Source of the DNA: Hyaloraphidium curvatum SAG 235-1
Lineage: Eukaryota; Fungi; Monoblepharomycota
DNA: 64,000 bases
Reading direction: 5' to 3'
Assembly (NCBI GenBank): GCA_025558095.1
Contig: JAIVFI010000031.1
Coordinates: forward strand, 124,001-188,000
The position numbers were made by a program, and so were the translations under genes. Shown here piece after piece: positions 7,837-30,337 of the stretch. Under the pieces are notes generated by a model that was not told the DNA's origin, searched no databases, and saw nothing but the letters and a program-made list of their open reading frames with translations. Within the stretch, counting starts at the first letter, position 1. Each line of letters opens with the position of its first letter.

Positions 7837-9375
7837 ATGCCCGCCGACGGCGCTTCCCCCGTCGATGGGGAACCTCCCGCGCCCGACGGAGATTCGGGCG
7901 CCCCCGGCCCCGCAGCCCGGCCACCGGCCCCGGACAAGCCGGAGCCCGACCGGCAACACAGTGCCCTGCAGCTCTCTGTCCTCACGTGCGCCTTCGTGGG
8001 CGTGAACGTGCTCTGGAACTACATCATCCTCTTCGCGACCCCCTTCTTCATCTCGCTGGGCGTCTCCAAGCCCGTGGTGCCCCTCCTGTGGCTCGGCGCC
8101 CCGATTTCGGGCATCGTGGTGCAGCCCTGGATCGGCGCATTCTGCGACGAATCGACCTCCCGCTGGGGCCGGCGCCGCCCGGCCCTGGTCTGGTCCATGA
8201 TCCTCGCGCTGGCCTCGCTGGCCGCCATGGCCACCTCCCGCGCCATCTGGGCCGTCGCCGCGGCGTTCCAGCTGCTCAACGTGGCGGCAAACGGGGTCGA
8301 GGCGAGCTGCCGCGGGCTGGTGATGGACTCGATCTCGCCGGAGCAGCAGCCGGCCGCGTGGGCCTACGTGGGCATGGCGAGCAACGTCGGCACGCTGCTG
8401 ATTAGCGTGGCCGGCGGGATCGATTTTGTCTCGCTTGCGCCGGGGACCATGTCGCAGTTCCAGTGGATGACGGCGCTTTCTGGCCTCTTCCTGGTCGCGA
8501 CGGCCGTTGTCACTGTCTTTGCCGTCAAGGAGACGCCGTACCGCCCGCTGCGCCGCGTTCCGACATTCATGGCCGGGGAATCGGAGCCCCTGCTTTCACT
8601 GGCCCCCCTCCCCGAGCTCTCGTGGGGCTCGCACCTGCAACGCTCCTTCGTCAAGGCCTTCCGCTCCCTCGTGCTCCCCGTCCCGCCCATCCTCTCGCTC
8701 ATCAACACCGCCAGCTTCTGGGGCTGGGGCGCCGGCTCCCTCGTGAGCATGTTCGGCACGGCCTGGGTGCAGCTCCACGCGCCGGACCCGGACCTGGGCC
8801 TCCGCGTGGCCAGCCTCTCGAGCGTCGCCGGGACCCTCCTCGCGACCGTGTGCACCCTCACCGTGCCGCCGCTGGTGCGCCGCCTCCGCGTGCCGATGAA
8901 GTGGGCCTGGGTCGCGGGGAACCTCACCGGCGCGGCGCTGCTCGCCGCCGGCCCCGCGTTCGCGGGGGACATGTTCGCCTCGGCGGCGGTGCTCGCGAGC
9001 ACGGGGTTCTACTGGATGGCGCTGGTCTGGGTGCCCATGGCGCTGCTAGGCGAGTTCGTGAGCGCCAGGACGGCGAGGCCGGGGGAGGAGGAGGTGCTGG
9101 ACTACGACGCGGAGGAGGGTTCCATTGCGGACGTCGTGGACGGGGCGTCGACGAAAGAGCCCCCGGAGGAGCGGGTCACGGCCGGCGGCTCCATCGGCGT
9201 GCTCAACTTCTACCAATCCTTCCCCAACCTGCTCACGATCGCGCTCAGCACCGTTATTTTCGGCGTCGCCGATGACGGCGCGGATACCATGGCGGTCGTG
9301 GGCACGTCCTTGCAGGTCGGGGGGGCCATGGCGCTGATCTCTGCCTTCTATGCCGCACGGATACCCAACGAGTAG
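7837..9375 (+). CDS. MFS sucrose/alpha-glucoside transporter (SUT/SLC45-like)
   Basis: Intronless 512 aa with ~12 hydrophobic helices; WLGAPISGIVVQPWIGAFCDESTSRWGRRRP signature; GVLNFYQSFPNL. Confidence 0.85.
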   Translation: MPADGASPVDGEPPAPDGDSGAPGPAARPPAPDKPEPDRQHSALQLSVLTCAFVGVNVLWNYIILFATPFFISLGVSKPVVPLLWLGAPISGIVVQPWIGAFCDESTSRWGRRRPALVWSMILALASLAAMATSRAIWAVAAAFQLLNVAANGVEASCRGLVMDSISPEQQPAAWAYVGMASNVGTLLISVAGGIDFVSLAPGTMSQFQWMTALSGLFLVATAVVTVFAVKETPYRPLRRVPTFMAGESEPLLSLAPLPELSWGSHLQRSFVKAFRSLVLPVPPILSLINTASFWGWGAGSLVSMFGTAWVQLHAPDPDLGLRVASLSSVAGTLLATVCTLTVPPLVRRLRVPMKWAWVAGNLTGAALLAAGPAFAGDMFASAAVLASTGFYWMALVWVPMALLGEFVSARTARPGEEEVLDYDAEEGSIADVVDGASTKEPPEERVTAGGSIGVLNFYQSFPNLLTIALSTVIFGVADDGADTMAVVGTSLQVGGAMALISAFYAARIPNE

Positions 9376-9469
9376 ATAACTTGTTTCTAATGCGATGGTA
9401 GAGCTGGTTCATCACTGCGTCGTTCGACGAGCTGATCGAGGCCAGCGGCCAGCGGGCGAATGATGAGGC

Positions 9470-9650
9470 AGTGGACCTCGACGCGTCGAACTTCCGTCCA
9501 ATCTTCCCGGCCTCACCGCGCCGAATCCACCTCCGCTTCTCCTCTCTGGAGGGAGAGAGGTTGGTTAACTCCTCCGTGAATGCTCAGGACCCGAGAAAGC
9601 CCTGCCCGAGAGCAATCCACACTCACCCATTCAGGTTCACGCCGGGTCGT
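9470..9650 (-). ncRNA. candidate omega-RNA (Fanzor guide scaffold)
   Basis: Directly 3' of the RuvC stop codon. Nested stem at 9576-9620 (GTGGA-T-TGCTC/GAGCA-TTCAC enclosing CAGGGC/GTCCTG), perfect 7-bp hairpin CCTCTCT/AGAGAGG at 9541-9560, 12-bp palindrome TCGACGCGTCGA at 9478-9489. Boundaries are guesses. Confidence 0.4.
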
Positions 9651-9651
9651 T

Positions 9652-12600
9652 TTATCCGGCAGTTCCGCGCAAAGCAGCGGGGTGGGTGAAGGTGGCAGGC
9701 CGCTGGCCGGTGGCGATGATGTGCAAGAACACTCGAATGAGGCACAGCGTCGCCGACCGATTCTTGTTGACTTCGAGCTTGTCCTTGAAGCCGTGCTTGT
9801 CCGAGCGGCCGGTACAGGACGGGCAGACCTTGTGCTCGACGTCGCCCTTGCGCAGAGGGTACGCCTTGAGTTCCGAGAGGCACGTGGGGCACCGCTGCGA
9901 CGTGTTGTGCTCGCCGAGCATCACCACCAGGAAGTGGCGCGAGAGCAGCTCGGCGATGCCGCCGCGGTACGGCATCTTCGACGACGAGCCCTGGCCAGCG
10001 CCGCAGAGAACAATGGGGTTGGGCACGGCGGCGATGCGGTCGACGGCCTGCTCCGCGGCCTCGCGCGCCGCGCGCTCCGTGATCCTGAGCTCCTCCGCGG
10101 TAGGCTTGCGGCCACCGTGCGCGCCCTGGGCCTGCCGGACGGCGGCGTTGTAGGTCTCGACATACGTCTTGCGCCGCCACAGGGCCTCGCAGGCCTCCGT
10201 GATCCAGTTGACGATGGCGTTGCTGCGGGCCTGGAAGGCGCGGAACCGGTAGGCCTTGGCCAGCTGGGTTTTGCGGCTCTGCGCGTGGTCGAGGAGGGGG
10301 CCGGCACTGCGGAGGAAGGCGGCACCTGGGCACGGGAAAGAGGTTAGCACTGCGGCGCTCAGAAACGCGGACGACAGCTCGCGCACCGGCCATGACGCCG
10401 TCCATGGGGTACGGCGACCTGGAGATCCCGCGCAGCCCCTGCGACATCGCGCCATGTGCCTCCCACCAGGCCGCCGACCTCGCCTCCTCGTCGCGCGCAC
10501 GGTACCCGGCGGACGAGAGGGGCTCGAACTTGCGGTGCACGGTCAGCTGCTCCAGCTGGCCACCCTCGCCGCGGAAGTGAACGGTGACGCTGATCGTGTG
10601 GCCGCCGGTGCCGGGGTCGACCGCGACCAGGATCGCCTCGAGGGCGAGGCTGTCTGCCGCCTCGACGGTCGTCGAGTGCCTGAAGAAGTACGGCACGTCC
10701 TTGCCATCCGTCTGCAGCTTCTGATATCGGTGGCCGCCGGGGCCGGATGGATGGCGACAGCAAAGCTGTCCTTCCAGGACCACGATTCGCGCGTGGTCAT
10801 GCGTGCCGGCGGCTCCGGCGCGAACGTGGCAGCACGACGAGGAGCAGCGGCTGGATATCGGGGTCGAGCCGCAGGCCGGGGGCCCGCGCGGGGCGGGAGG
10901 AGAGGGAGGAGTGGGTGGAGGAGCAGGAGGGATGCCGGCGGTCGCGCTCGCGGCCTCGTTGTCCGCCGCCGGCGCCGTTGCCGTGGTCGCGGCCTTGATG
11001 TGCCGATGCCCGGCGAGTTCGGGCAGCGTGCGGCGAAATGCGTTGCTGGTCACCTGCGCATATTGCTCAGGCTGCGCGACGGACCACGTGCACGACGTCG
11101 AGCTGGCGGAGCAGTGGCTGCGCGGCACCGGATGGCGTGAGACTCTGGCGCCGGCACGCACATCAAAGCTGGAGACGCACCCGCAGGTCGGCATGCATCC
11201 GTCGCAGTCTCGCTTTGCCGCCTCGCAGGGCTTGCATGTCGGCAGCTCGTACACGCACGCGCGGTTGGCCGCGGCACAGTCGCTGATCGCGGGCGTCAGC
11301 AACTCGAGATTAGGCATATCGGCGTCGTTGATCGTGCTTGACACCTACGAGCAGCCGGGGTACAGCCGATCGCACTTGCCCTTCTTGCAGCCCCTGCAGT
11401 CGATTGGCCACCGCGGGTTGTCGCCGAGGATCGGATCTCCCGCCTGCCTTTGAGCGGTCGTCAGCATCTGCCCGCAGTCAGCTGCCGCTGCGCCAAGTGA
11501 CCCACCGCAGTCTTGGTCCGCACGCCGCCGAGTTGGTTGTAGCGGTGCGGATGGCGCTGGTTGGTCACAAGTATCCGCGTTTCTGTGCCGTTGGACTGGA
11601 AGTGGTTAGACTTGTAGGGCTCGAACCTGTCCACGTGCGCGTCCCCGCGGTCCATCGCCTGACCGCGTACGACGCGGGCAAGGCCGGGGATCATCTTGTT
11701 CATGAGCGCGGGGAGGCCGGGTGCCGTGGCGGTGTCGATCGATGTTTGCTGATTCTGCTTGTCCAGGGCATCCTCGACGGCCTTGATGCGCGGCACTTTC
11801 CAGCCGCGAACGACGTCGGCAAGGGCAAACGCGACGGGCTTGCCGTCCATGTCGGTGCCGCCCTCCTTCAGCCGATGCAGATGTCCGATATAGGCGGAGA
11901 TCCAGCGCCCGAACGCCGAGTTGTCCACGGGCTGGAAGCGGTCCCCGGCATGGAGCCGTGGCACGACGTTCTGGCGCAGCTCGCCCGCCACGACCCCGCG
12001 GCGGACCATCACCAGCTGCTCCACCAGAGTCTGCTTGGTGAGCTCGGTTGCGCCCAAGCCGACCTCGGTGCGCACGTCGTCCTTGTGCTTGGCCGTGCGG
12101 ACACCTCCGTCCGCAACCGTGAGCAGGTTCAGGAACAGGTCGAAGGCGGCCTCGATCGGCCCGCGCTTCTCTGCCGACAGGTCCGCGGTGAAGCGCTCTC
12201 GAAGACCGGCAACGTCGCCCTCCACCTCGCCGACCAGGATGGTTGCGCGGGCGTAGATGTCCAGCACCGTCTCGGCGGGCGTCTCGTCCGCCACGGCCCC
12301 GGCAGTGTCCGCGTCGTCGTCGCCCGTGGCCTGGCGCACCCCGGCGAACTCGACCTCCTCCGCCTCCTCGTCTCCCTCTTCTTCGGTCGCGACCGCGCGC
12401 GCGCCGCGCTTCGGCGGAACGAGGACGCAGCGGAGGCGGTAAGCCAGCGCGTTGATGAGCCCGCGCGGGACCCCGGGCGCGAACGCCTTGGAGAGGTAGG
12501 CGTGCGCCTTGTTGTACACCAGGCGGCGGAGACCGTCGCGGGCGAGGCGCGTGAGGGTGGCGAAGAGACGGCCGGAATGGATCTGCCCGAAAGCACCGGG

Positions 12601-15600
12601 GAACAGCTTGTAGGAGTGGTGAATGGTCTCGTGCTCGATGAACGAGTCCGAGATTGCCAGCGACGCGGCGGCGAGCGAGACCATGAGCGGGGTTCCGGAG
12701 GCGTCGGAGTCGGGAAAGTTCGCGTAGGCCCGCGGGAGCAGGCGCTCGATCGCCAGGCGCGCACCCTCGTCGACGTTTGCCGCGGCGCGCCAGGAAGGAC
12801 CGACGACGGCGGCGTCGCCCGGCACGAGGGAGGGGTCCGGGATGAGGTTGATCGCGGTGATGGAATCCGCGAGGTGCGACGGGAGCTTGACCCCCGAGAT
12901 CGGGTGCGGGGCCATGGCGACCTCGACGTCGGTCTGCCGGATGAGCTCGTCGTTGGTGACGGGCTGCAGCCGCAGGCTGGCGACGCCACCAGTGGAGAAG
13001 GGAAGCGGGGTGGTGGAGACGTTGCGGCCGGCAGAGGCGGCATCTAGCACCTTGCGCATGTTGACGCCGAGGCCCACGAGTAGCGCGGGGCGGAAAGCTC
13101 GGAGCTCGTGTCGCAGGAACTCGAGCTGCATGCGGCGGTGGAGCGCCATCGCGCGGCGAGCCTCGTCCTTGGTGAGCTCGGGGGCCTTGTCCCGACCGAC
13201 GCGGAGCATTAGGGGGAGATCGCAGCAGCAGCACTCGTCGCCGTCGTTCTGCGCGGAGGCGTCAGTCGAGTGCTCGGAAGGTTAAGGCAATCAACACCCA
13301 CGAAGAGCATCGGGCACATCCTGTTGACGTCCGCGAACACGATGTTGCCCAGAACGCGGCAGCGCGCGGCGGTCGCAGCCTGCCAGTGAGGGTCCTCGGG
13401 GTCCTTGAGGGGCACGATCTCCTTGATCACGTCGATGTCGGCCTTGATGGCCATGATGTCCTTCTCCAGGACCTCGGCGGGGTACCGACCGGGATCGCCG
13501 CGCTGCGTCGATGTGTCAGCACGGGTGAGGGTGTGTGTGCTTCCGAGCGACGGGGAGCCCACCTTGGCGCGCTCGAGGGCGCTCTGCAGCCGGTGCAGGG
13601 CGACGACGTCGAGAACGTTGAACAGGAGCTTGTTGGTCGGGTTGAGGAAGTGGCGGCGGGAACCAAGGAGCACGTCGAGCTTGGGGCAGTTCCCAAAGAG
13701 CAGCGTGACGGGAAGCGAGGGGTCAAAGGCCGGCGCCGACAGGTCCCCGTACACGAAGCGGCGGGTGGGATCGTCCAGGGCGCCGCCGCGGTGGAAGGCC
13801 AGCCCAGGCTCTCGGGCGAGCACGCGGAACCTGGCTTCCACGAAATCAACAAAGGCAAGGCCGCGCAGCTGCCTGCCGGCGGCTTCTTGCATCGCGGTGA
13901 GGAGGCGATCGCTGCCCATTGCGATGCTGGTTTCGCGCATCGCCTGCCGATAATCGCGCCGGAGGTCGGGGTCCACGGGCTGCGGCGCCGGGATCTCGGT
14001 GCGGTCGGGTCCCGCATTCTCGTCCGTCGCAAATGCCAGCTCGGCAGGCAGCCCGAGGATCTCGTCCGCGCGGTCCTGGCCATCCGCCCCGCGGGGACTC
14101 CAGGATCTGAGCGGCGCCAGGCGGAGTATGTTGCGTTGCAGAAACAACCTCTTCCTTCCGTCCTCCTGGTCGGTTGAAATGGGCTGGTCCAGGTACTCGC
14201 GCGCGAGGTCCGGGAAAATGCGGCACAGAGTTCCGACCTCCATCTCCGCCGCCCGCTCCAGATGCGGGTTGCGCTGCCGCGGCGGCTTGCCGCTTTTCGC
14301 GAGATCCTCTGCGTAGGCAGCCCCCGCGGCCGCCTTCTTCAGCTTCAGCCACTCCTCAAAGCCACTGCGGATTCGCACCGGGTCCTCGTCCGCTTGCAGG
14401 CCGATCCGGGTTAGTTCGGCATCCAGCTCCCTGAGGAAGGCGCGGATCTCGGGGATCCCCGGACCCATTCGAGCTGGATCTCCGCCGCCCTCGAGCCTCA
14501 GCGCGGTGGCGACCGCCGCGTACGTATTATCAATTAGGGCTTCCGGATCGGAGCAGTTGAGAGACGGAGGCACTCCCGGGAACCACGCAGCCCGCTGCTC
14601 TTCGTTCAAGTGCAGGTACGTGTCCAGGACGACGCGGAATGCGGCATTGCCGGCCATCAGCAACCTCTGCTGCGTGCGGAACGCCAGCGCCATGAAGTCG
14701 CCGAACTTGCGCCTCTCCGCGAGCTCGACCTCGGCCTGCTTCTCCGTGCCGACCATAGCATGCTGCTTCCGCATAAAGTCCTCGATGTCCGCGTCCGACG
14801 GCCTGCCGTTGCCCTGCCGCACCTGCGCCCAGATGAAATCCTTCACAGGGCCCGACCAGGGCTGCACCAGGTGGTCGAGGACGGGGCCAGGGATCGTGAC
14901 GGGGCTGCTGCCCGCGCCGCCGCCCTTGCGCGCGTCTTCCTCCTCCTCCTCTTCCGCCTCGTCCATCTTGGCGTCCTTCGGATCCAGCTTGAAGCCCTCG
15001 TCGGCCTTCCCGCGGCCGCGCTTCTGCTTCTTGGGCGCGGGCGCGGGAGCCGAATCCTGGCGACCTGCGCCCCGCGCGTTGCCCGACGCCGGCGCGTGAT
15101 CGCCGGGAACGTGCTCCCAGCGCAAGCCTTCGGCGTCCACTTTGCGCAGCCTAACCAACAGGCGCGGCCATTCGGCCCCACGACCCTGCTCCGGTGCTCC
15201 CTCTCGATCGCCCGCGGGTTCCCCTGCACCAGACGTCTCCTTGGTCGCGCTCCGGGGATCCACAGTCGCGTGCAGCGGGTCGAACATCGGTTCGGCCCTC
15301 CCCTTGCCCTTGGCCTGCCTCGTTCTCTGCCTAATCTCGTCGTCCTCTGGAGCTTCGTCGTCGTCCTCTTCCGGATCCGGACCCGCCGCGGGCGCCTCGT
15401 CCATCGGCACGTCGTCCACGGCAGTCGCGGCGCCGCCGGCGGGGGCGTCCTCCATCATCGCCTCCTGAGCCGGTTCGGGCGATGGTGAAGCCTCGGGAGG
15501 GTCCAGCTCCATGGGCGCCGGCGCGGCAGCTCCCGCTGCGGTGCCTCCGGGGGGTCCTGCGTCCGCGGCAGCTGCCGCACTCCCGCCCGAGCTCCCGCTA

Positions 15601-18600
15601 GCAGACCCGGAGGCGGCTTCCGCCGCGACTGCCGCGCACACCGCGTCCCTAGCGGCGCCCGGCGTGGCGGTCGAACGGATCGCGGTGCTGCCGACAAGGA
15701 AGATGTAGCCGTCCCCGTCGGGCTCCTCCTTGGCCGCGTTCCAGGCGTGCTTGCCGACGACCTCGCGCCTTTCCTCCTCGTTCTTGGCCCGCCGCTCGAA
15801 CGCGGCCTGGATGCCCTCGCCCATCTTAATGGCGACCTTGACCGCGGCGTCTCGCTCCGGAGTCATGGCCTGACTGGACGCCGGTCCCGACGACGATCCC
15901 GAAGTCGGGCCCGCGCTGGCCGATGCCGATGCGCCGGCCGAAGGGTCGGCCGTCTGCTGCGGGTCCACCGGTGCCGGGGAGGAAGGACCGGGCGCGGCAG
16001 CGGCGGGCAAAGGCTGCGCGAGCGCGGCCTGGCGACGGTTGTGCGTGAGCTCGATGTCATCAACCGCCGCCGTTCGCTCCCCACCTTCAGGCTCACGTAC
16101 TGGTGCCGCCGTCGGGGCCTCGGAGACGGGGTCCCGGCGATGCTGCCCGGAACGGGCCGCTGGCCGAGCTTCTCGAGCACGTCGATGAGCTCCTCCTTCA
16201 TGCTCTCGCGCGTCTTGGCGTCCGCCTTCGTGAGCTTCTCGCCCGGGTCGTACCGCCCGTCGAGCCTCCGAAGACCGCTGCGCAGCTCGTTCCGCCGGGC
16301 CTCCAGCGCCTCCCGGTGGTCCGCAGCGAGTGGATCCATGGCAAAGACCTCGGCCAGGGGCACGAGGAGGGGAAACATGGCCTGCGCCGACGGCGCGACG
16401 TCGAGCGGAAGCCGGAGACGGCGCTGCGGCGTCCCGTCCGCCCGCTTGCCCTCGGTCTCGTGGTAGATGCGGACCAGCTCCTCCTTGTCGGCCGCGATGA
16501 GATCGCGGGGTTTGGGGGTGACGAGGTTGTTCTGCACGACCATGTCCAGGCACGTACGGATCCAGCCGGACCCCGGAACAGCTTCCCGCGCCTGGAGCCA
16601 CGCGGCGTCAATGATCGCCTTGTTCGCCCGCAGCACGTCCCGGAACCGCTTGGCGCCCTGCGGGGAGGGACAGTGAGCCGCCGTTCCCTTCAGCCTGATC
16701 GCAAAAGCTCCGAATCAACGACACCCACGATGAAGTGGCTCGTCGTGTTGTGGCTTCCCGCCACGAGCACCGATGCCTTGAGCTCCTCCGCGGTCACGTC
16801 CAGGTGCGCCAGGATATCCTGCTTCAGGAACAGGCTCGGCGTCGCCCCCTTGACGTCGGTGAACAGATCGGCGATCCCGTGTATGGCGCCCTCGCGGACG
16901 GCCATGTACAAGGGGTCGCGGTCGCTCGTGACGACCAGGCGCAGCTCCTGTTCGCCGTGGGAATCCAACCGCAGCTCCGCGTCGCGGACAAAATGGCCGT
17001 CAGCCTCAGCCACCACGAGCTGAACATCCGTCGCGCCGAACATGGCGTGCGCAGCCCGGAGGCGGTCGCGGACGAGGCGCGAGAGAACGAGCATGAGGCC
17101 GGGCCCCAGGCGAGCGGAGCTTGCAACGTGGCCGGCGCGAGCCGTTGCTAGACCTGGATGGAATGAGATGAAGGCGGTGAGCGGGAGCCGTTTTCGGGGG
17201 GTGGTCCCTTGTGAGACCCACGATTGGCACCGGTACGATCGTCCGGCCGGTCGAAGGCCTTGCGCACGCCGTCGGCGCCCGGCTTGCCCGCGACCTTGAG
17301 GAAGCCCTTGAGGGCGCCGTTGAAGCTCTCCGAGTTGGCCGTCCCGCGCTTCTCGGCCTCGTGCACCTGCTTCCGCAGGGCGTAGAACGCGCCTCCTTGC
17401 TGCTGCTGCTGCTGCTGCTGGCCGTCGAACACCTCCGGTACCAACTGCCACGGCTCTGCATCCGCTGCCCCGGGCAACGCGATCGGGTGCTTGCCCGCGC
17501 GGGCCTGCTGTGTTCCCTGCGCGGACGGCTTGGGCGCCCCGGTCTCGAAGTAGACGACAACGGTGTCGCCGCGGGCGCGAGACGCCGGCGTTGCCCTGAG
17601 CAGCCGCTTAAGCTTGTCCACGAACGCGCGCGCGAGCTCCCCCAGGCTGTCCTCCACCCAGGGGAGGGTCTCGTCGGCCGGCGGCAGGGTCATTGAGTCC
17701 GCACGCCCAAAGAGGAGCGGCGCCAGGGCCTGCCGCGCCTTGGCCTCGTAATCCGAGCCGAGGATGGAATGCAGGATCACGGAGGCGTCGACGTAGAAAC
17801 AGATCCGGTTGAAGGGAATGCGCTGCCGGGCGAGGTGGTCGTCGATCTGCAGGCGGTACGATGCGCCGCCGTGCAGCTTCATCGCCACGGGCCAGATCTC
17901 CTTGTTGGTCGCGGTCTTGCCGCCGCCGTGCTTGCCGCCGATGGTCTGCACCTCGCCTTCCGTCAGCGTGCCGGTGAGGCCGCCGCCGGCCTTCTTCTTG
18001 CCGCCCTTGCCGCCTGCCCGCGCCGTCGTGCCCTCGGGGGTGTCCATGGCCGGCAGCTCGACGCGTGGGCCGCGCGCGGGGGTTGCTGCAGCAGAAGTTG
18101 CCGCGCGAGAGGGCTGGGACGGAGAAGGCCCGGAGGAAGCGGGCTCGGAGGGAGACGGAGCCGCGGCCGGGGTGGAGTGCGCGGGCGAGACCGAGGGGCC
18201 GGGCGCGGCACCAGCATTGGCGTTCCGCAACCCCGCCCTGCGCGAGGTCCGTTCCGTGCCCACCCCCCTGCCGCCAGTCGTCACCTCCGGATCCGGGTCG
18301 CTGTCCTTGTCGTCGCCCTCGTCCTCGTCCTCCGACCGAACCCGCTTGGGCGTCTTGGGCACCTGGCCGCCCCTCCCACCCCGACCACCGCCCCTGCCTC
18401 CCCTCCCCCGCCTTCCTCCGCTCGAAGTCGCGTTCTTGGCCCCGCCGGGTAGGCGGACGGTGGCCAAGAGGGTGGCCTCGTTCCAGAGCAGGTCCCCGAC
18501 CTGCTCGTCCCCGACCTGCCCGTCTTTCTCCAGGACGAGGCCGCTCCGTGTGCGTAGGTAGAAGGACGTCTTGGGGACGCCGAGGCGGGCTGCGACGGAT

Positions 18601-21228
18601 TTCTGCGCGCGGATTGGGAGGTCAGCAAGACAGCCGGGTGCCATGGTGAGAATTTGGCCCACCTTGAGCGCCGAGATCCGCAAGTCGGAGCCCACGCGGA
18701 CCGTCAGGGTCTTGTTCAGCGAGTGCAGGCCGTCGCTGAGGGTGATGGGGAAGGAGGAGACGAATAGGGTGAACTTGCGAAGCCGGCGGGCAAAGACGGA
18801 GCTGCCGGCCTGGATCCCGCACTGGCCCAGCGACGCTGCGGGGCAAAGTCGCCTGCGCCGATGGTGGTCGGAAAAGAGGTCGACGGCAGAGACACGGCAG
18901 CCGATGCGGTCTGCGACGAGGACCTGTCGCGATCGGGAATGGGCGTAGGAAGGGCGTCAACTGCTTGCGCCTCGACAGGAATGGATCGCGACGAACCTGG
19001 AGATCAGACACCGTATCCGAGGCGCGCATCGAGATCTCAACCCCGCGCGAGGCGTTGTGCCCAGCCACAACGTCGGACGGGAGGTGCAGAATGAAGAGCA
19101 CCTCCGGCTCGTCGACCTCGCCCGCCTCGGCGGCGGTCCACGGGCCGGCCAAGGTGAACCGCGAGAGCGGTCCATTCCAAGGGACCCGGGGAGCGGGCTC
19201 GTCGTCGGCGCCACCCGCAACAGGCAGAGAGCGCGCGCCGGCGTCATGAAGAGGAGGTCCGCTGGGCGGCGCCGCCTCCGACGCGACTGCGGGGCTTCCG
19301 CCCTCTCGCCAAGCGGACGACGACGGCCGGGTGAGGGGCGTCGGGGGGTCGTCGTCTCCGTCGCGGCGCTCTGGGCCTGCCGCCACGACCGCAGAAACGG
19401 CGGGGTTGGGGGAGGGAGGTCGGGGAGCTGGTCGAGAGGCTGGGGTCCAGGGCGCGGGCGCATTGTCGACAGCTCCGGCGACGACCTTGGCCGCAACAGC
19501 GTCGGCAGCCAGTGGCCCGGGCCCTGCGGCAAGCCCGGCATCGGCAGCGCGCGGTGCGGGTTCGGCGGCGGAGGCGTCCGGCTCGGAGGGAGGGTGGATG
19601 GTCAACGACGGAGCCGGGATGAGCGCGGCGCCCGAGGCCGGCCTGACGGGGGGTGTCCACGAGGCCGGAGGCGTCTCCATCACACCACACTGGTGGTCGT
19701 GTGCGGTAGCATCGGCGACGGCGGCGGAGGGCGCCGCGGAGGCCGGACGCCAGGGGCCCGACATCTTGAGGCGCCAGGTGAGCGCGGCGCCGACGAACGT
19801 TCCCCATTCGGAATCTGAACAAAGAGAGGCGGCACGTCAGAGATGGCACCGAAGGGCCCACATGGCAGCTCACCGGTCAGGTAGTCGAGCTTGCCAGGAC
19901 GGTCGCACATGCGGTCCCTGAGCTGGAAGGCAATGACAGCGTGGCGGAGCTGGGTGCGGGCAAGCTCGGCCTGCGCGCGCCTGGCGAGCTCGGCATCGCA
20001 CATGGCAACGACGTCTGCGCCAGCGGACGAGTGGGGAGCGTCAATGCTGCGAGCTCCATGCGATCCGGAGCGATCAAAACCCACCGGCTGCGGTGTGACG
20101 CCCCAGCAACTTCTCGGCGGCGCGCGCCGCGCAAGGAGACCCGAGGCGTTGGGCCGGGCGAGACCGTGATGACGGCGCCGCAGACGGCGCGACATCTTTG
20201 GCGCCGGCCCCTTGCACTTCGACAGGCTGCGCCGGGTGCGCGGGTCCCGGGCCGCTGGCAGGGGTCGGAGCGACGCGGCGAACAAGGCGCACCCCGCTGG
20301 CGTCCCCATGCAACGATGCGGATGGTGAGGACGGCCGGGCGACGTGAGCTCCGAGGCGGTGCACAGATCTTGTCGACTTCGGCAACGACCCAGAGATTCG
20401 CGCAGGTAAGGCGGGGAAGTCGCTCGAGCGGCAGTCGGGGCTCCCGTGTCCGACGAGAAAGACGGCGACCAGAAGCGCGACGACGGCCAGGAAAGCGGCG
20501 GCGACTCGCCGGGTAACGAGAGCCGTCCAAAGACCCTTGGCAGCGGCGGCGACCCCTTCGAAGGCTCCCTTGGCCACTCCCTTGGCGATGCCGGCAACTG
20601 ACTGCATCGTGATATCCAAGAACGCCGCGAAGCCGAGCAACACGCCTAGGGCCATGCACAGACCCACAGCCGCGGTCGAAGCATCGTAGCTAACGCGTCG
20701 CGGGTGATGCTCAGGGTGCTCCACCTTGCCCGCGGCGACATCCTCGACCCTGGTGGATCTCCTCGCGTCCCGGGCCTCGGCCTTGAGCTGCCTCGCGAGT
20801 TCAATCTGCACCCTGCGTTCGGTTCTCCGTTCTCGGGCAATGTACTGAGCCACCCGCTTGTCCAGAACCGCGGCGCGGACCCGGCAGTAAGTCTGGAACA
20901 GGCCCTCGTAGTCGCACTTGCCGCCGTCGTGGAGGGCCGACGCTCGCTTGGCGGCGACCTCCTCGTCGGCCGTCTTGCGCGCGCGCATGTTCATCTTGCT
21001 TGCCTTCCCCCGGGGAACGGCCCTGCGGGGCGACGTGCCGTCTTCGGGGTCGACGAGCTCGCAGATCTCGAGCCGCAGCGCCGCGGCCTCGGACGTCTTG
21101 TCGTACATCTCGTCGAAAAAGCCCAAGATGACGGACGTCGGCGCCCCCTGAAGCGCCGCGCTTATGTCCTCGGGCGGAACAGCACCCGGGTCGGGCAGGT
21201 CGACTGCGGCCTCGGCGGCCCCGGCCAT
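9652..21228 (-). CDS. giant multidomain Fanzor/TnpB-family fusion protein (~3,580 aa): TM-Ubl-Ubl-PIN(XPG/FEN1-like)-UDG-like-2xZn2Cys6-RuvC/ZnF
   Basis: Exons 21228-20085, 20014-19874, 19814-18997, 18923-18663, 18602-17222, 17153-16729, 16657-16097, 16028-13563, 13502-13302, 13248-11506, 11443-11349, 11282-11181, 11117-10387, 10325-9652 sum to 10,743 nt (3,581 codons). All 13 introns are GT..AG, 53-73 nt, phases consistent. RuvC motifs ILVAVDPG, IVLCGAG, LGEHNTSQRCPTC..CPSC, VNKNRSATLCL, QRPATF. Confidence 0.75.
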
Positions 21229-23164
21229 GGTCAGAATCCGGAAAAGATGAGATCAGAACACGGTGAAGAGCACGAGGTCGCAGAGATCTGGCGCGGGAAC
21301 GGCCGTGAGCAAAGGCCGGCGAAAGGTTCTGCCGGCTGGGCCCGAGCGCCGGCTGCACGGACCGCCGCGGCCGAGGGAGCCCCCGCAAACCGCAGCTTGC
21401 GACCCAAAGGTCGCAGAACCGGGCCAGACCGGGTCTCCGCCGGCGGCAGGCGCGGATGGCCGGGGCATAAAGTGCCCGAGATGGAGGTCGCCCCAGGCCA
21501 ACCCCCCCCCCCTCCGCGGCGCTGCCCGGCCGCGCCAGTCGCAGATCAAGACAAAAAAGCTCGGAAACTTACGCGACTGCTGGCGCCGGAGGTCTGGTGC
21601 GTGAAAGACGACACGGGGGGAGTCCTTTGTTGACCTTGTTTGCAAGAGGCGTCCTGGTCCCACGAGCATCAGGTCGCCACAGGCGCGTCCGAGCTACATG
21701 CAAGCCGCTTCCGAGGCAAAAGATCCTCCCTCAAAACAAAGAAACGTCCTAGAATTCGAAACGAAGAAGATCCGCCGCATGCGAGAGAGCGACGCCCGCC
21801 ACGTCACCCGTCCAGCTACCGTTTCAGAGACTCAGGCAAAACCACTATTCCATCGATACAATGGCGAACAATAGCAAGAGAGCATGCGAGTAGACGAGGA
21901 CCGGATGACACCGCCGTCGCGGCCGCTGAGCTGCCCCTAGCTGGGGTTTGCCCGTTGGCCTTGCCGGCGGCGGCGTCCCGTGCCGCTTGCGCACGGACGG
22001 AAGAAATGGCAGTGTGTCCGATCCGGTGGCACGCGATGCCGGCCGCCCGAGGCAACGAGTTTGACGACGGTCCAGGCATCCAAATGGTTCCGGGAATGAG
22101 CAGCGGGCCGCAACACCGAGGAATCGCGAAAGGGGCGGATGCGGTTCCTAGCGACGACGAGTCAGCCGACACCGCGGATAGCATCGCGGCGCGGACACTC
22201 ACATTGGCGGTTCACGGGCACTCTGCTGCCGATATACGCCAACGCCAACGCGTGGGGGAGTAGAGGGCGCTCTGCCGGATACGATCGAGGTCCTCGGCGT
22301 GCCGTCGCAGGAGCCGCGCTCCGCAGCGCCGCGTCAGAATCGTGCCCGGGAGACGCCGACTTATAGCTAAAAGAAAAGAAACGGTCCCGCAGAAGCAGCG
22401 CAACGCGCTCCCCAGCGTCTCGCCGCCGCCAGAGACGGTGGCACGGAGCCCCCTCGACAGGGTACCTCCTCGCAGCCAAGAACAGCAACGCAAGCGCGGC
22501 CATCCAACCACCGCCGGCGGCGACGAGGCCGCACAGGCAGGCGGTCGAACCGGCGGCGCTCAAAGCTCCGCAGGCAGCGACAACTGGCATCGGGCGCACA
22601 CCCCATCCGGCGGCACAGGAACAAGGCGCCCAAGACAAATCCACGCCGACATTCTTCCTGAGCGGCCCCCAAAAAGAAATCTCCGAGCAATAAAACGACG
22701 GGAGAGCCGCGCCGACGGCCCGCGCCCGACCGCCGTCTGCCCGGGTCAGCTGCCGTCGCGCAAAACACCCATCGACGGGCACCACGGGGCTACGCGATGC
22801 CGCCGAGGTGTGTGCAGCCACGTCGCTTGGTCGAACACCGCCGGCAAGGCCTGCCGCCGCCGACGATCGCTCCTGACCGCGGTGGGGCCCAGCGTCCGCG
22901 ACACCGCCCCGCGACCGAATCCCGGCGCCATCGCCGGTAGAGGCGCCGAGAAATGAACCAGCTGAATGAAAACCGATGCACAGCGTGGCGCGCCGTGCTC
23001 TGCAGCGCGTGTGAGGGGTTCGGAGGTTTGGCTGTTTGCGCGAGTCGTATATTGCCGTTTCTCCAAAGCTTGCCCACCCGGCCCCACCCCGCACACAAAA
23101 CTGGGCGCCGAATCTCCCATCCCCCAGGCCACGGCAAAAGCAGGAACCAATAGGAAATACCCGG

Positions 23165-23340
23165 TAAGGGGGAAGGGGGAGGGGGGGAGGGAAAAGGGGG
23201 GGGGGAAAGAAAGGGGAAGGAAAAGAAGGGGGGAAAGGAGAGAGGGGGGAGGGGAAGGGGGGAAGAGAAGGAGAAAAGGAAGGGGGGAGAAAGAAAGGGG
23301 AAAAGAAGAAAGGGGAAAGGGGAGGGGGAGAGGGGAAAAA
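23165..23340 (+). repeat. polypurine (G/A) low-complexity tract
   Basis: ~175 nt almost entirely G and A. Confidence 0.9.
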
Positions 23341-23414: not shown

Positions 23415-24114
23415 ATGCTCCCCGCCCGCCTGGCCCACACGCGCGTCGTCCTGGCGTCGGCCTCGCCGCGCCGGAAACAGATCCTGGAGGGCATCGGGAT
23501 CGCCGCCGAGGTCGTCCCGAGCACCTTTCCCGAAACTCTCGATAAGGCAGCGTTCGCGTCGCCCGCGGGATACGTGCTGGCCACTGCAGAGGGCAAGGGG
23601 AAGGAGGTGCTGGAACGCGTCGCTGCGGCGGGCGGGGAACCGCCGTTGGTCGTCGCAGCGGACACGATCGTGGTGCTCGGGAACGAGATCCTGGAGAAAC
23701 CGGAGTCGCCCGAGGCGGCAATGGACATGCTCTCGCGGCTGAGCGGGCGTTCCCACACGGTGCTCACGGCCGTCGTGCTGCTCCACCCGGATCCGCGGGC
23801 GCCGGGCGGGCCGCCATTAAAATCGGCGTTCGTGGAGGAGACCGAGGTGTTTTTCGCCGAGCTGTCGGAGCAGGAGGTCGAGGCGTACGTCGCGACGGGC
23901 GAGCCGATGGACAAGGCGGGCGGATACGGTGGGCTCCTTCGACACGTGCCTCGTAACACGGAACTGATTTTCTTATCTGCTTTTGCCAGGCTACCAAACC
24001 GGCGCGGGCTCGCTGCTGGTGGAGCGCATAAACGGCTGCCACTACAACGTCGTGGGATTCCCTACGCACCGGTTCGCGCGGGAGCTTCGGCACTTCCTCG
24101 ACAAACTACCGTGA
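23415..24114 (+). CDS. Maf family nucleoside triphosphate pyrophosphatase (YhdE/ASMTL-like)
   Basis: VVLASASPRRKQIL, VVAADTIVVL, ILEKP, TGEPMDKAGGYG|YQ...INGCHYNVVGFP; one intron ~23929-23989. Confidence 0.92.
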
Positions 24115-24448
24115 AGCTATTCAAGCCTGTTACGGCGTGTTCAGTCAGCAGGATCCCGGACGGCCACGGCTAGCCACGGTCGACGACGCGGAATCCAAGC
24201 TCATGTCAACGGTAACCTCGCACGAGGGTCTCGTTTGCTTGGCATGTAGGGACTGGAGCTGGCCCTTCACATCGAGACATCGAACTTCTGGGCAAGAGGA
24301 CCTCCAAGTCCTCGGCGCCGCTGGACAATCCTGAGCACTTCAGCATGGAGCGTTGTGGGGCCTGCACGGACCGGCGATTGGCAACGGTGTGATCGTGAAT
24401 GAAACCACCGAAATGTCACATCGCACAGCTGCCCTTATCATGTACAAT

Positions 24449-26020
24449 TCATCCTCTCTCAAAGTCAACGAGCGATTGCAACTCCTCATCCCTCACTAGC
24501 TCACACCTCCCACAAGTGCGCGGCTTACGCGCAATGTAGTGCTCCATGATGGCCAAGTTGAAGTCCGGGTCCCCAGCCGCGTCAAGGTTCTTCAGCCACT
24601 GCGTCCGCGGGGTAACGACCCTGAGCGAGTGGATTTCATCGATCCCATCCATGGAGAAGGGCAAATCTCTCGGCAGCTCCTGCATGAAGCCCTGCACGAG
24701 GCAAAGTTGCTTCCTCACGTCGAGATCTGCAAGAACGCCGGTCAATATAATGGCTTACACGTCGTTGCAAGACACGCTCACTTTCCAGGTGTTGTTCGTC
24801 TTCAAGGATCGACTTCTTGTCGAGCTTCCTTGCTCCCATACGCATTGCACGGCACCAAAACAAGAACAGTTCCGCCGTCTTCTTCTTATACTGTTCCCAG
24901 ATCTTGGGAAGCGTGAAGGCCACCCGGCCCAACGAAAGCCACGTGGCCCAAATGGTCTCTTGGAAGTTGTGGTCGAAAATGCAACGGAGCTCAAGGCACC
25001 AGTCGGCCCACGACCAAAGCCAATCATCATAGCGAGGCAGCGGTCGCTTGTGCACGTTGTGGTTACGTTCCTTGAACTCGGCCAAAGTGCGGGGCGTGCC
25101 CGGTGCGGCGAGAATATGCGATTCAGGCAAGATGGGAGCATGGTACGTTTCGTCCACGTAGTCCAGCAGTTTCTCGACATCGTCAAAAAGAGCTCGAAAC
25201 TCTGTGGCACGCCGCCGGATTTTCTCTAGAAGCAGTGTCAGCGTGGAAATGCGCTGACCAAACTTGACAGCTTACGGATTTCTTCGTGCGCGGCAGAGCA
25301 CAAGGCGCCCCATTGAGGGGCGCTGCTAAAGTTGTTGCTGGCCTTCATTTGCATCAGGTCCATCACCAAGGCCGGGACCTGGGCCTCGGGAACTTCCGCT
25401 TCCCCGTTCCCTTCGCTCAGCGGTGCCACGTTCCGTGTGCGAAGAACCTCCAGGCAACCATTAATGAGCACTTCCAGTGGCGCGTTCAGCAGCTTGTCGA
25501 CAGCATCGATACTGGGGTCGCAACGCAGCCATTCGATGGCGGCAGTCGCAACGGCATCGTGCTCAGCCGTCCACGGAGCAGACTTTGTGCGAGCGACGAC
25601 TTCGGCTCCGAGGTTGTCATAGTATCTCACAACAAGCACGGCGCTATGTCCTTCCAAATGAAGGGCGACTGACGATGGGCTCTCGTACTTGATTGCTTTT
25701 CCACATATCCTGCACATGAAGACCCGATTGCCTCCTCCGTCGAGGTACGACTCCTGGGACTCGCAGCCCAGTAGAACGTCCTGGTGCCCACCATCATCGT
25801 TGCGGAGGTAGAAGCGACGAGTTGCGATCCCCCCGAGGCCCTTCACGACAAAGTCCCGGCCGATGGGCCACCACCCAGCAACGGGGAGAGCAGTTTCGTC
25901 GTTCGGTGCCACCACTCTCTTGCCCGTAGACCGCTTGCGCGCGTCGGCCGGAGCGACGGGGTTCTCCCCAGATAACTCAATGGACCGCTTCCGCGACACG
26001 CTCTGGCCGTGACGCGACAT
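24449..26020 (-). CDS. hypothetical protein with BED/C2H2-type zinc finger (multi-exon or decayed)
   Basis: FMCRICGKAIKYESPSSVALHLEGH at ~25650-25720; same-strand ORFs 24636-25157 and 24449-24745 probably belong to it; lower GC. Confidence 0.4.
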
Positions 26021-26327
26021 TATTTCCCAGGCAGTGAGGGTCTGAGAGCATGGGAATGCTGCTACACGACTTACAGTAGATCGTCGATCGATTCCGCGGA
26101 TCCGCATGAATCTCCCTTCAAAATGACTTGTCTTGCTTCTTCTTGCTGTTTTGCTTTGGTGTCGGCTGATGTCCTGCCCGAGAAGCGCCGTACCGCTCGG
26201 GAACGTTGCATGCGAGGAACCTGCCAGGTTCCAACCTGCCAGGTTCCGACCGCAGCGCTTCCCGTGGACCCTTCCGAAACGCAAGCGACCTCTCTCGCAA
26301 GAGACACTCTCTTGCTTTCGCGACAAC

Positions 26328-27011
26328 ATGGCCGCAGCCGGCGTGAACATGGCCCTCACGATTCCCTACGTCAGTCGCCTCAACGACCTCCAGTACATCG
26401 CCGGTCGTCGCGACGATCCCACCAAGACCATTCGCGATGGGCTGATCACCCTTAAAGCCGGCAACCCGGTCTTCAACCTCTACACGGCCAAGGCTGCGAC
26501 TAGAGACTTTGGCCTGTACCATCTTGGGGCCACTCATGCCGTTGTCGTCTTCCGCGGGACGGACCTGGGAAACGGTGTGCCCCAGATCTTGCGCGACGCA
26601 CTGCACGACGCACAGCTCTTCTTCAACTCGGTTCCGACCCGCACCGAAGCTGCGCGCCTCTTTATCACCCAGAACTGGGCTCACTGGACGAATGGCCGCA
26701 CTCTGGTCTTCGTCGGGCACTCTCTCGGTGGTCGTATCGCTGCGGAGCTGACCGCCCACTTCCCGAACTCTTCGGCCCACATTTTCAAGTGAGCGTTTCC
26801 TCTATCTCAAGGTTTCCCCCCACTGAAGCAGTGAATCGCCAGCCCCGCGTACCCAATCCATGACGGCAGGCCTCCTGCACCCCACCTGCAGCGTGTCGTC
26901 GCCTATTGCATCAAGGGCGACTGGGTCTGGCAGTCCTTCAACGGGCCCCACCGTTTTGTTATCCCCGTCACGCAGAAGGACAAGCACGCCCTTTCCAACT
27001 TCATCAGGTAG
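26328..27011 (+). CDS. class-3 lipase-like alpha/beta hydrolase
   Basis: VVVFRGTD, FVGHSLGG (Ser), then after an intron at ~26789-26842 FNPA, KGDWV (Asp), KHALSNF (His). Confidence 0.8.
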
Positions 27012-27871
27012 TGTGCTTCAGATGCGCTCGTGGTATGTGCTGCGTACCGGTCTGCATTCCCGCACGCCCTTGACACTCTTTGTCTTACGCAGTTCGAATA
27101 AAGGAAACGAAGCAATGGGAGCAGGCGGATAACGAAAGGACCCTATTCGGTGGGCAGGGGGAACCGAACTCTATCCGGAAACATGGAGAAGCCCAGACAT
27201 AGGGGTATTGACTTTGATGGTGATGTCTACTAGCGGACGTCACCTGATCTGTCGCGATTTTGTTGTACAACATTGGGGAAAGCACTACAGTTGCAGTTTC
27301 AACTCCGCGATCAGCGATTGCCCCGTGTCACCGGGTTCGACACCGGTCACCGGTACGTCAGGCTCACCTGACAACCAGGTTAGCATCTTTGCCTGGCCCG
27401 TTCTGTCCATCAATGCGTGTCCGCTCACCCCAACGGTGGGTCGGTTGGAATCGGAGAAACAACAATAAGCATTCTGGGCGGACAACTCTCGGCAAGATCA
27501 AACTCACGCCTAACCTCCTATCTTGTCTTTCATTGGACCGCAGGTTGGATTCAAACTCATCTGCAACCATACGAAAAGAGCTTGATTTCGGACTGTAAGG
27601 TCACCTGCAGCTTCCAATCCAAGACACGGATGTAGTGAGCCTGGCCCAAAGAAGGAGAGCCACTGGCGTGCGCGACCGACAATCCGTCCCGCGCGGATGC
27701 GACGTGCCTGAGCCAAACTGCACGCCTCCCTTGGAGAGTGGACACGGTCGGCACCAGAAGCATCACGGCAAATTCGTCCGTCGCATTAAACCAGCAAAGA
27801 CGCAGCCTACTAACGTAGAGAGTTATCGGGGTATCGCATCCCGCCCGACCCGGCCTTCCGCTTCCCGCCGC

Positions 27872-30337
27872 CTAGTCCTTCCTCTTCCCCTTCCTCTTGG
27901 GGGCCATGGGGTGCTCCCCCCTTTCGATCCAGTGCGCGTGCAGCCGCGCCGCGTACTGCGAAAAGGTCGACTTGGCGGTGCCGACAAAGTGCGCGCCCGA
28001 GGCGACGGCGATCTGGTCCACGAGGGGGACGAAGAGGTGCGCCGTGCGGCGTGTGAAGACCTCGGCGGGGACCAGGCGGCCGTCGGGGAAGGCCACGTCC
28101 TTGGCCTTGGCCAGGCCCGAGGGCTGGTGCATGAGGTCGCCGAGGACAAAGGTGCAGGGGTACTTGTCGAAGAGGGCGCGGAAGGAGGGGTTGTTGCGCG
28201 CGTCCAGGGCGTCGGTGGCCACGTAGACGATGGGCACCGACCAGGGGTCCTTGGCCGTCGCGTGGAGGTGCTTGCAGATCTCGAGCAGGGACTCGGGGTC
28301 CGAGACCGTGCTGGGGTCCGCGGGGAGGTAGGGAGAGAGCGGGTGCGACGCCGGCCCGGCGGCTGGGGCGTCGGTGGCGTTGGCGGGCGCCGCCCCGTCC
28401 GCGGCGGCGGCCTCCTTGGCCTCCTCGGGCGCCTTGTCCTCCTCCCCCTTGGCGGGCTCGGCAGCCTCGACGACCTTGTCCGCATCGGCGTGCTCCGCCG
28501 GCGGCGCCAGCGCACCGCCGATGTTGTTGAACTTTGGCGGCCTTGCCTCGTCGAGCTCGGGCGCCTTGGGCGGCGCCTTCTCGGCCGCCGCCGCCGCCTC
28601 GCCCTCCTCGTCGGCGGGCTTCCTGTTGCGCGGCGCCGGCACCGACCCGACCGCAATCATCCCCCCGGGCTTGCCCTTGCCCTTCTTGCGCTTCTCGACC
28701 GACCCCTCGGTCACCTTCTTCCACAGCCCGCCCAGGTTCTTGGTCCCCTGCCCCTTCTTGGGCTTCTTGCCGTTGGCGGTCGCGTTGCGCCTCGCCCCCT
28801 CCACCCACGCATCGAGCTCCGCCACGGCGGCCGCGATCGTCTCGTCCGGCTTGCTCGAGAACATCTCGCCCCCGCCGCGGGCCTCGCCGATGCGCAGGTG
28901 CAGCCCGAGGAAGCTCCCCCGCCCGCCGAGCTTGCCCACGACGCCGTCGGCCAGCCGGTGCAGGACCGGGTTGGCGTACAGCATCGCGTCCTCGACGGCC
29001 TTGGCCAGCTCCAGGCCGCGCTTGGATGACATGACGACGCGGTCCGAGCCAAAGACGGAGCCGAAGTGGAGGATGCGGAAGTCCCCGTGGGCGTCGAGGT
29101 CCGCGCGGAGCTGGGTGAGGTTGAGGAGGGGCCCGCGGTACTTGCCCAGCGTGACGGGCTGCCGCGGGCCGGGCGGCTTGTTGGAGCGGTTCTTGGACGT
29201 CTTCTTCTGCCACGGCGGCTTGTACCCGTTCTCGGCGAAGCGGTACGCCCACACGTGCTCGTCGTCCTCGAAGACGACGGTCTGGTTGGCCCGGCGGAAG
29301 GGCTCCAGCCAGTTGTGGTCGCGCACGTCGGCGCCGACCTCGTCCATGAACTGGTCCATCGAGATCCACCGCATGCCGAGCTTCTCGAGCGAGTCGAGGC
29401 GGAACAGCTCCTCCCAGGGGAGCACGATGCGGTTCCACCGCCCGCTCTTGTCGACGCACGTGAGCAGCTTCATGTCCTTCCACTTTTTCGGGCGCTTGAC
29501 GAAGCGGCACTTTACGGGGTCGATGTTGGAGAGGTGCGTCTCTGCGAGCAGGCGCTGCTCGACGGCGAACGGCCGGTGGGGTATCGGGTCGCCCAGCATG
29601 GCGGGCGGGACGACGAGGGTGAGGTTGAGGGTGTGCGCGATGAGGAGGGCGTTGGCGAAGGCGACCCGCTGGTTGTTGAGGCCTGTAACGGAGCGAGAAG
29701 AGCGAGCGAGGGGTCAGTTTCCGGGAAGCCGGCCGGCGGGGAGCCACGCACCGCTGTGGTACATGTACAGCATGTAGCGCCGGCCGTCGGGCACCGACGG
29801 CGCATCCCGCCTGCGCAGCCGCTGCTTGAGCACTGCCCTGCCGGCCTCGACGTTGCGTGCCACGGCGGCGTCCGCCTCGACGTCCGCGTCCGAGAAGGGG
29901 ATCCGGTACGGCGGACGGCTGCCGATTGCGGGGGCGGGGTCCGGGGGGGCGTCGGGCGGCGCCTGTGCGCCGTCCCCGGTGTTTATGGGGTTATTTGCGG
30001 GAGCCTGTGCATTATTTTTGATTGCGGGGGCGGCGGAGAAGGGGAGCGGCGCGCGGGCGTAGAGCAGCAGGGCGAGGCCGGCCAGCAGACAGAGCAGGCC
30101 GACCCGCCGCGGGCCCCAGCCGGCCGGCAGGCCCCGCGGCGCCTGCGGGCGGAGCAGCTGCAGCCCGCGCGGTCTGAGACCGTTCAGAGTGTCCAGCGCC
30201 AGCCGGTTGGCGGCCTTCCGCAGCGGCGACGGCGCGCCGTGCGGCCGCGCGACCGCCGGCGCCGGCAGCTCGCCGTGCACGCGCGGCGCCGGCAAATCGC
30301 CCTCGGGCGTCGCCGTGCGGGCCACCGCGCCGTGCAT
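27872..30337 (-). CDS. O-fucosyltransferase-family glycosyltransferase (type II membrane)
   Basis: TM helix; YMYHSG|LNNQRVAFANALLIAHTLNLTLVVPP; FLGLHLRIGE; VYVATD; VDQIAVASGAHFVGTAKSTFS; one intron ~29683-29751. Confidence 0.8.

Follow-up and report, generated by a model that had tools for sequence, protein, structure and literature searches.

A multicopy element of the fungus Hyaloraphidium curvatum appears to carry one giant spliced gene joining Fanzor1 to a FEN1/XPG-like nuclease and may supply its own means of spread

A stretch of 64,000 nt from the genome of Hyaloraphidium curvatum SAG 235-1 (GCA_025558095.1, contig JAIVFI010000031.1, positions 124,001 to 188,000; hereafter the window) was found to contain a mobile element of about 13.5 kb, whose single predicted gene joins a C-terminal Fanzor1 to a FEN1/XPG-like PIN nuclease and to ubiquitin-like (Ubl), UDG-like, and Zn2Cys6-like modules. 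Most Fanzor1 proteins have 600–700 amino acids (aa) (PMC11423790). Fanzors are usually viewed as small transposon passengers in eukaryotes. We favor a reading in which this is a selfish element with one Fanzor1-based polyprotein gene that supplies its own means of spread, and we rate that mechanism as a whole at slightly below even chances.

The gene model was rebuilt from the window coordinates on the minus strand, running from 21228 to 9652 with 14 exons and 13 GT..AG introns of 53–73 nt, and the joined exons formed a single uninterrupted frame, 10,743 nt long and corresponding to 3,580 aa plus the stop codon. An alternative boundary of intron 10, with a frame of 10,749 nt, was set aside because the paralogs favored the boundary listed in Table 1. 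A branch-point motif was present 6–35 nt upstream of the AG in 12 of the 13 introns, compared with 6.5% of exonic YAGs, and every donor had a G at position +5, compared with 27% of exonic GTs. Since introns 4, 8, and 12 are in frame and free of stop codons, their removal rests on these splice signals and on conservation among paralogs. Domain searches were done exon by exon, while the joined coordinates were used for the frame, stops, motif positions, and ratios of nonsynonymous to synonymous substitution (dN/dS).

A sister copy on another contig (G000:C8:319067-332501), 94.9% identical to the window copy, retained all splice sites and an open frame of 3,578 aa with no frameshifting indel across 10.7 kb. 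Its exon indels were net multiples of three, whereas those in the 5′ noncoding part mostly were not. The dN/dS between the two copies was 0.28 overall (values for individual parts are given in Table 1), and by this comparison the conserved open frame is under purifying selection. The paralog on contig C14, which is about 35% identical (23–58% aa identity per exon), had an open frame of 3,030 aa. In this paralog, 11 introns matched introns 3–13 in both position and phase, and a single exon held the N-terminal domain together with the beginning of Ubl 1. An independent public annotation from a third H. curvatum subfamily, KAI9027716.1 (P0001), comprises 2,449 aa spanning the Ubl end, PIN, and RuvC; the model begins within Ubl 2 and omits the N-terminal part. 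As the PIN, UDG-like, Ubl, zinc-cluster, and RuvC domains are each interrupted by introns, the modules need splicing. A single giant open reading frame (ORF) across all 14 exons is therefore very probable at the sequence level, where the rebuilt frame, sister copy, and paralog agree with an earlier note on this DNA, which had described one spliced gene of 10,743 nt and about 3,580 aa with 13 GT..AG introns.

The element was compared with the whole H. curvatum genome (31.9 Mb, 55 contigs). Copies with 90–99% identity occurred at unrelated sites, including the full-length one on C8 and two that comprised only the 3′ part, on C15 (470 bp, 99%) and C17 (2.6 kb, 90%). The right ends of the copies lay within about 15 nt of each other, while the left ends were ragged, and introns were retained. 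Two distant subfamilies (C14 with a truncated C5 copy, and C8:81-90k) kept the exon order, and a second family (on C2, C11, C13, and C30), more distant still, had the Fanzor part in common. No terminal inverted repeat (TIR) or target site duplication (TSD) was seen in the comparison of element ends, and such ends were rejected. No transposase ORF was detected in the element, in which the exon 8 block is unassigned. Retroposition of the long interspersed nuclear element type was likewise rejected because introns were kept and poly-A was absent. Judged by its copies, the element is recently mobile and hence not a host gene, and the earlier suggestion of a host-style editing, repair, or regulatory machine is not supported at such a multicopy location.

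The profile built from the last exon retrieved 205 proteins. In the PDB, the clade profile matched PpFz1 (7e-11), SpuFz1 (1.4e-3), and TnpB, and exon 14 scored 4e-29 against a profile built without H. curvatum sequences. The motif of Bao and Jurka, D-x(125-275)-[TS][TS]xx-C4, was present with D at aa 3280, TS 218 residues downstream, and CPTC..CPSC. The canonical RuvC-II Glu was replaced (LCGAG) and an alternative Glu preceded the zinc finger (GEHNTS), which is the arrangement of Fanzor1. At RuvC-III, KN was found instead of the strict RD in all copies of the genome, while about 90% of the scored relatives had Asp. Since a D-E-N triad is active in GtFz1 and the D606N substitution raises SpuFz1 activity (PMC11423790), and since RuvC is strongly constrained here, a dead RuvC inferred from the D-to-N change alone was rejected. 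Apart from the strict RD, the C-terminal part is Fanzor1 by motif and profile, and its matches to PpFz1, SpuFz1, and TnpB bear out the C-terminal Fanzor of the earlier note.

Other searches were less productive. The sole Pfam match in the raw frames was a sub-threshold TNB, word-based homolog searches added nothing for RuvC, PIN, or UDG, profiles made from paralogs alone yielded noise against the PDB, and no relative was present among the viral contigs searched. Exon 10 aligned weakly but in register with the REC/WED lobe of the clade, an alignment that would make the two zinc clusters an insertion inside Fanzor; the ESM atlas returned nothing for this exon, and its AlphaFold model was uninformative. 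Both AlphaFold models that were made were poor, with pLDDT (predicted local distance difference test) values of 37 for exon 10 and 42. In a relative from another organism, a CCHC knuckle was found at the zinc-cluster site and an intron at the position of intron 10.

The acidic active-site motifs and the H2TH of the PIN domain were in the expected order, with six of the seven acidic positions kept in three paralogs. All of the best 31 PDB matches of the PIN profile built from metagenomic fusions were to Pol I, Rad2/XPG, FEN1, or Exo1. An independent PIN profile matched a paralog with an independent E-value (iE) of 0.002, and there was no direct Pfam match. Despite its quality, the AlphaFold model of the paralog PIN ranked FEN1/GEN1 first, with the top 13 fold matches in the FEN1/XPG/Exo1/Pol I family. 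The XPG/FEN1-like PIN of the earlier note is thus backed by both motifs and family profiles.

The same pairing recurred in at least seven unrelated metagenomic proteins. An N-terminal PIN and a Fanzor shared a single ORF in six long metagenomic proteins (P0007, P0035, P0039, P0051, P0054, and P0171); P0115 was a PIN-Fanzor by motif only, and at L082 the PIN was joined through an in-phase 53-nt intron. The PIN-bearing members were scattered over the clade tree, which has long branches, and this scatter fits an ancestral fusion without proving it. The PIN-Fanzor core forms a widespread clade, with UDG, Ubl, and Zn2Cys6 seen only in this lineage. Three long Fanzor1 relatives of 1.1–1.4 kaa (P0114, P0115, and P0147) had different or divergent N-terminal extensions. 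At L045:4992-6233 and L046:5082-6113, from two samples, a PIN-Fanzor ORF stood at the same site, tail to tail with a gene resembling the second subunit of RNA polymerase.

At the right end of the element, nine copies all kept a hairpin over the stop codon completely paired; its two compensatory columns represent a single event between two families. A candidate terminal spliceosomal intron follows, with its donor 25 nt after the stop codon and its acceptor coinciding with the right end of the element. A strict donor at most 90 nt past the stop codon was present in 10 of the 14 lineages counted, compared with 1.2 expected. In one subfamily, the terminal intron was variable and unstructured while the part before the donor was conserved, which suggests that the omega-RNA scaffold ends at the donor and that the guide comes from splicing. 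A terminal donor would equally fit a role in guarding against early polyadenylation, or simply the usual splicing of a 3′ untranslated region (UTR). No Rfam match was obtained for 9300-10000, the region scanned. A longer scaffold stem, in which the last codons pair with the CTGA motif, was rejected with a z near 0. Elsewhere in the genome, a perfect 45-bp copy of the terminal-intron hairpin (window 9574-9618) was found at G000:C1:1157782-1157826 (L081), where CAATC microhomology and a duplication of 11 nt were also seen; it looks like templated filler DNA, suggesting that the right end can serve as a repair template.

On the reading that we favor, the pre-mRNA would be spliced to one message, and the transcript reading through the right end would give rise to the omega-RNA, the removal of the terminal intron joining the pre-donor scaffold to the flank after the AG as the guide. 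The precursor protein would be held at a membrane (possibly myristoylated in the C14 paralog) until a deubiquitinase cut after RLxGG, releasing a protein of about 2,740 aa that starts with a nuclear localization signal (NLS) and would act as an enzyme in the nucleus. Fanzor would then break the DNA, the FEN1-like domain would resect or trim 5′ flaps, and host DNA synthesis would copy the element into the break from its right end, early stops giving 5′-truncated copies. The UDG-like and Zn2Cys6 parts may be lineage-specific accessories, the former for extra nicking or cleaning and the latter for DNA affinity. It is a bolder and rather improbable proposal that the element stands for a novel class of DNA transposon in eukaryotes, without transposase, in which Fanzor-FEN1-primed copying proceeds from the right end and a spliceosomal intron there builds the guide by linking the scaffold to the following exon downstream, the nuclease thus being programmed by splicing.

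Several observations weigh against this reading. The copies are few in number, and two of the four close ones stop 5–14 nt short of the AG. The right flanks of copies are unlike each other's predicted guides, and the choice of new sites by existing guides was accordingly rejected. The last acidic position of FEN1 is His or Asn in this lineage, and the H. curvatum genome itself accounts for four of the 14 lineages used to count donors. That no transposase gene was called beside the PIN-Fanzor ORFs on metagenomic contigs of 4–6.7 kb is in favor of the reading, but these contigs are short, and a transposase may lie nearby or act in trans.

The most serious alternative, which we nevertheless consider unlikely, is a non-autonomous passenger that Helitron2 or another transposase moves in trans, with Fanzor doing no more than restoring it by homing at empty alleles and PIN speeding repair of the resulting break. 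The Fanzor elements CRe-1/2/3 are 5′-truncated, 3′-intact, and mobilized by Helitron2, and Spu-1 lacks a transposase (PMC3627910; PMC10432273); the one-ended copy pattern is thus known for Helitron2-borne Fanzors, and the H. curvatum genome has three Helitron Rep loci (L062-L064, on C2, C35, and C8), both of which count against self-supplied spread. However, neither element end matched DNA near the Helitron loci or other families, in a comparison that lay outside the Helitron ends themselves, and nothing was seen here like the 98% identity of CRe ends to those of their Helitrons. TSDs of 7–19 bp as in CRe were not found, and no Rep-helicase lies within the element.

A role as an RNA-guided weapon against rival elements or against viruses, for which Fanzor would open the target and PIN and the UDG-like domain would degrade or damage it, with spread as a by-product, seems quite improbable. 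A 5′ nuclease combined with a glycosylase-like fold would suit the destruction of DNA, and membrane tethering with a Ubl-GG release site would suit an inducible effector, but what is predicted as guide is plain flanking DNA without an array, and no targets turned up, no genome-wide guide search having been made. We give still less credence to a domesticated Fanzor, its nuclease perhaps dead, that would use RNA to bring modules for repair and transcription to chosen sites of the host. The RuvC-III Asn, the two GAL4-type clusters, and the host-like intron density could be read in this way; against it stand the multiple, recently mobile copies with variable flanks, the low dN/dS of RuvC, and the activity of D-E-N or D606N enzymes noted above, and intron-rich Fanzors are known in transposons (PMC10530073). 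Finally, that two or more adjacent genes (e.g., TM-Ubl, PIN, and UDG-Fanzor) were joined on paper only is very improbable, since the start of KAI9027716.1 within Ubl 2 and the position of intron 7 between domains are outweighed by the same junctions and phases in three paralogs, the shared exon in C14, the single PIN-Fanzor ORF of intronless relatives, and the sister copy without a frameshifting indel.

AcademX transposons, eukaryotic DNA elements with a DDE transposase, TIRs, and TSDs but no Fanzor, encode an XPG-like nuclease; none of the DDE/TIR transposon features, including those of Academ (DDE transposase, TIRs, and TSDs), was detected in the H. curvatum element. The PIN domain resembles the FEN1/XPG/Exo1/Pol I 5′-nuclease family in its acidic motifs and H2TH, but is here fused to Fanzor in a mobile element and differs at the last acidic position. 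With SpuFz1, PpFz1, and GtFz1 (PMC11423790, PMC10432273), the protein shares the rearranged RuvC-II Glu, the C4 zinc ribbon, the C-terminal RP motif, and the position at the right end of a mobile element, as well as the D-E-N triad of GtFz1. Unlike these Fanzor1 systems, it has 3,580 aa with fused PIN, UDG-like, Ubl, and Zn2Cys6 parts, no inverted repeats, and a terminal splice donor. CRe-1/2/3 of Chlamydomonas (PMC3627910) are similar in their intron-containing Fanzor1 and 5′-truncated, 3′-anchored copies, whereas here the protein is a giant multi-enzyme one, and Helitron-like ends and TSDs were not found. In IStrons (bioRxiv 10.1101/2023.11.20.567912; PMC13565253), an intron and a TnpB-type guide RNA overlap at the right end, as the candidate intron and guide would here, but an IStron is a group I intron of bacteria that extends over the entire element, while the candidate here is spliceosomal, short, and confined to the 3′ UTR; no group I intron spanning the element was found, the Rfam scan covering 9300-10000.

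No FEN1/XPG-Fanzor fusion was described in the literature searched, which leaves out most subscription journals, and a 2026 OMEGA review makes no mention of FEN or glycosylase. A broad Fanzor1 clade fused to a FEN1-like nuclease, apparently spreading here without a transposase in the element, offers a direct test of whether copying needs no more than flap processing and a nuclease guided by RNA. The conserved splice donor would explain, in concrete terms, how omega-RNA could arise from a Pol II transcript, and the natural intronless nuclease-exonuclease fusions of 1.2–1.6 kaa are candidates for biochemistry and genome editing.

The remaining modules were assigned from weaker signals. The predicted membrane helices were also present in the C8:81-90k copy and absent in C14, which starts with MGG. 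In each of the three paralogs, the second Ubl ended in RLxGG (aa 838-842), and a basic stretch resembling an NLS came next. The Ubl halves aligned in register with host ubiquitin, weakly (half-domain p from <.001 to.66); the Ubl regions were absent among PF00240 matches and had no Pfam match. For the UDG-like region, ESM features scored 0.90 and all 10 best family matches were in the UDG family or clan, while Pfam, PDB, and homolog searches were blank; its GNCP and HP motifs are what we take to be UDG motifs. Zinc cluster 2 fits Cx2Cx6Cx5-12Cx2Cx6-8C, cluster 1 has four rather than six residues between Cys2 and Cys3, and Pfam Zn_clus reached E = 0.014 in a paralog, below the cut-off. The UDG-like, Ubl, and Zn2Cys6 assignments of the earlier note are thus retained on weaker grounds, with two Ubls and with two clusters that appear to sit inside Fanzor.

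Table 1. Features of the element in window coordinates; dN/dS values compare the window copy with the C8 sister copy
Feature	Position	Strand	Remarks
Whole mobile element, about 13.5 kb	9546..23040	−	Full 94.9% copy on C8 with unrelated flanks; 5′-truncated copies on C15 and C17
Candidate terminal spliceosomal intron, 81 nt	9546..9626	−	GTGAGT donor, TTAAC branch point, CAG acceptor
Conserved 5-bp hairpin over stop codon, with CTGA motif	9627..9660 (hairpin 9641-9660)	−	Candidate omega-RNA scaffold core
Fanzor1 RuvC and TNB	9652..10850	−	Motifs, profile searches; dN/dS 0.11
RuvC-III N	9754-9768	−	Within Fanzor1 RuvC
C4 zinc ribbon	9814-9894	−	Within Fanzor1 RuvC and TNB
Rearranged RuvC-II E	9898-9915	−	Within Fanzor1 RuvC
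RuvC-I D	10610-10624	−	Within Fanzor1 RuvC
Two Zn2Cys6-like clusters	11084..11398	−	Inside Fanzor, between WED strand and RuvC-I; each split by a phase-2 intron; dN/dS 0.13
Putative Fanzor REC/WED lobe	11506..12889	−	Exon 10; ends in SNG (=TDG) strand; iE 4e-7 to P0067
UDG-superfamily-like domain	12890..13790	−	Exons 8-10; GNCP motif, CCCC cluster, HP motif
Conserved helical block	13791..15110	−	Exon 8; dN/dS 0.23
FEN1/XPG-like PIN nuclease and H2TH	16560..17990	−	Exons 5-7; motifs VD, FE, EAD, SDRD; dN/dS 0.09
Two putative tandem ubiquitin-like domains	18441..19095	−	Interrupted by introns 3 and 4
Exons 2-3	18997..20014 (20014-19874, 19814-18997)	−	Linker of low complexity, then first part of Ubl 1
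Exon 1 (aa 1-381)	20085..21228	−	Helical N-terminal domain common to three paralogs (p <.001 against shuffles)
Two predicted transmembrane helices	20614-20682, 20458-20526	−	Hydropathy; after N-terminal domain
5′ noncoding arm	21229..23040	−	Blocks 22160-22412 and 22489-22577 conserved in distant C14 copy (74–84%)
Candidate 5′-UTR intron	21522-21572	−	Within 5′ noncoding arm
Introns 1-5	20084-20015, 19873-19815, 18996-18924, 18662-18603, 17221-17154	−	Rebuilt model
Introns 6-10	16728-16658, 16096-16029, 13562-13503, 13301-13249, 11505-11444	−	Rebuilt model
Introns 11-13	11348-11283, 11180-11118, 10386-10326	−	Rebuilt model

The divergence between the window copy and the C8 sister copy was a mosaic, with about 0.3% in exons 2-4, about 6% in exons 7-12, and 1.6% in exon 14, which suggests recombination or conversion among copies. 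A tandem duplication was present inside the RuvC exon of the C5 copy (L022, 742-743k), and the C17 copy was frameshifted. The members of the second Fanzor family (L025-L028, on C2, C11, C13, and C30) extended up to about 9 kb and resembled the element in having this hairpin and donor and a right end that stops at an AG, with Asn at RuvC-III, only a faint PIN-like signal, and no Pfam match in the ORFs tested.

The element lies between two host genes on the plus strand, a major facilitator superfamily (MFS)/sugar transporter gene (7837-9375), which is 170 nt away and tail to tail with it, and a Maf-like gene on the opposite side (23415-24113). Its left end is adjoined by a 118-bp stub of another repeat family (window 23050-23167), followed by a purine run; this family has at least seven copies that are 99% identical and exceed 500 bp elsewhere. 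The region 24100-27900 formed an island of lower GC content (56–59%) with putative spliced genes.

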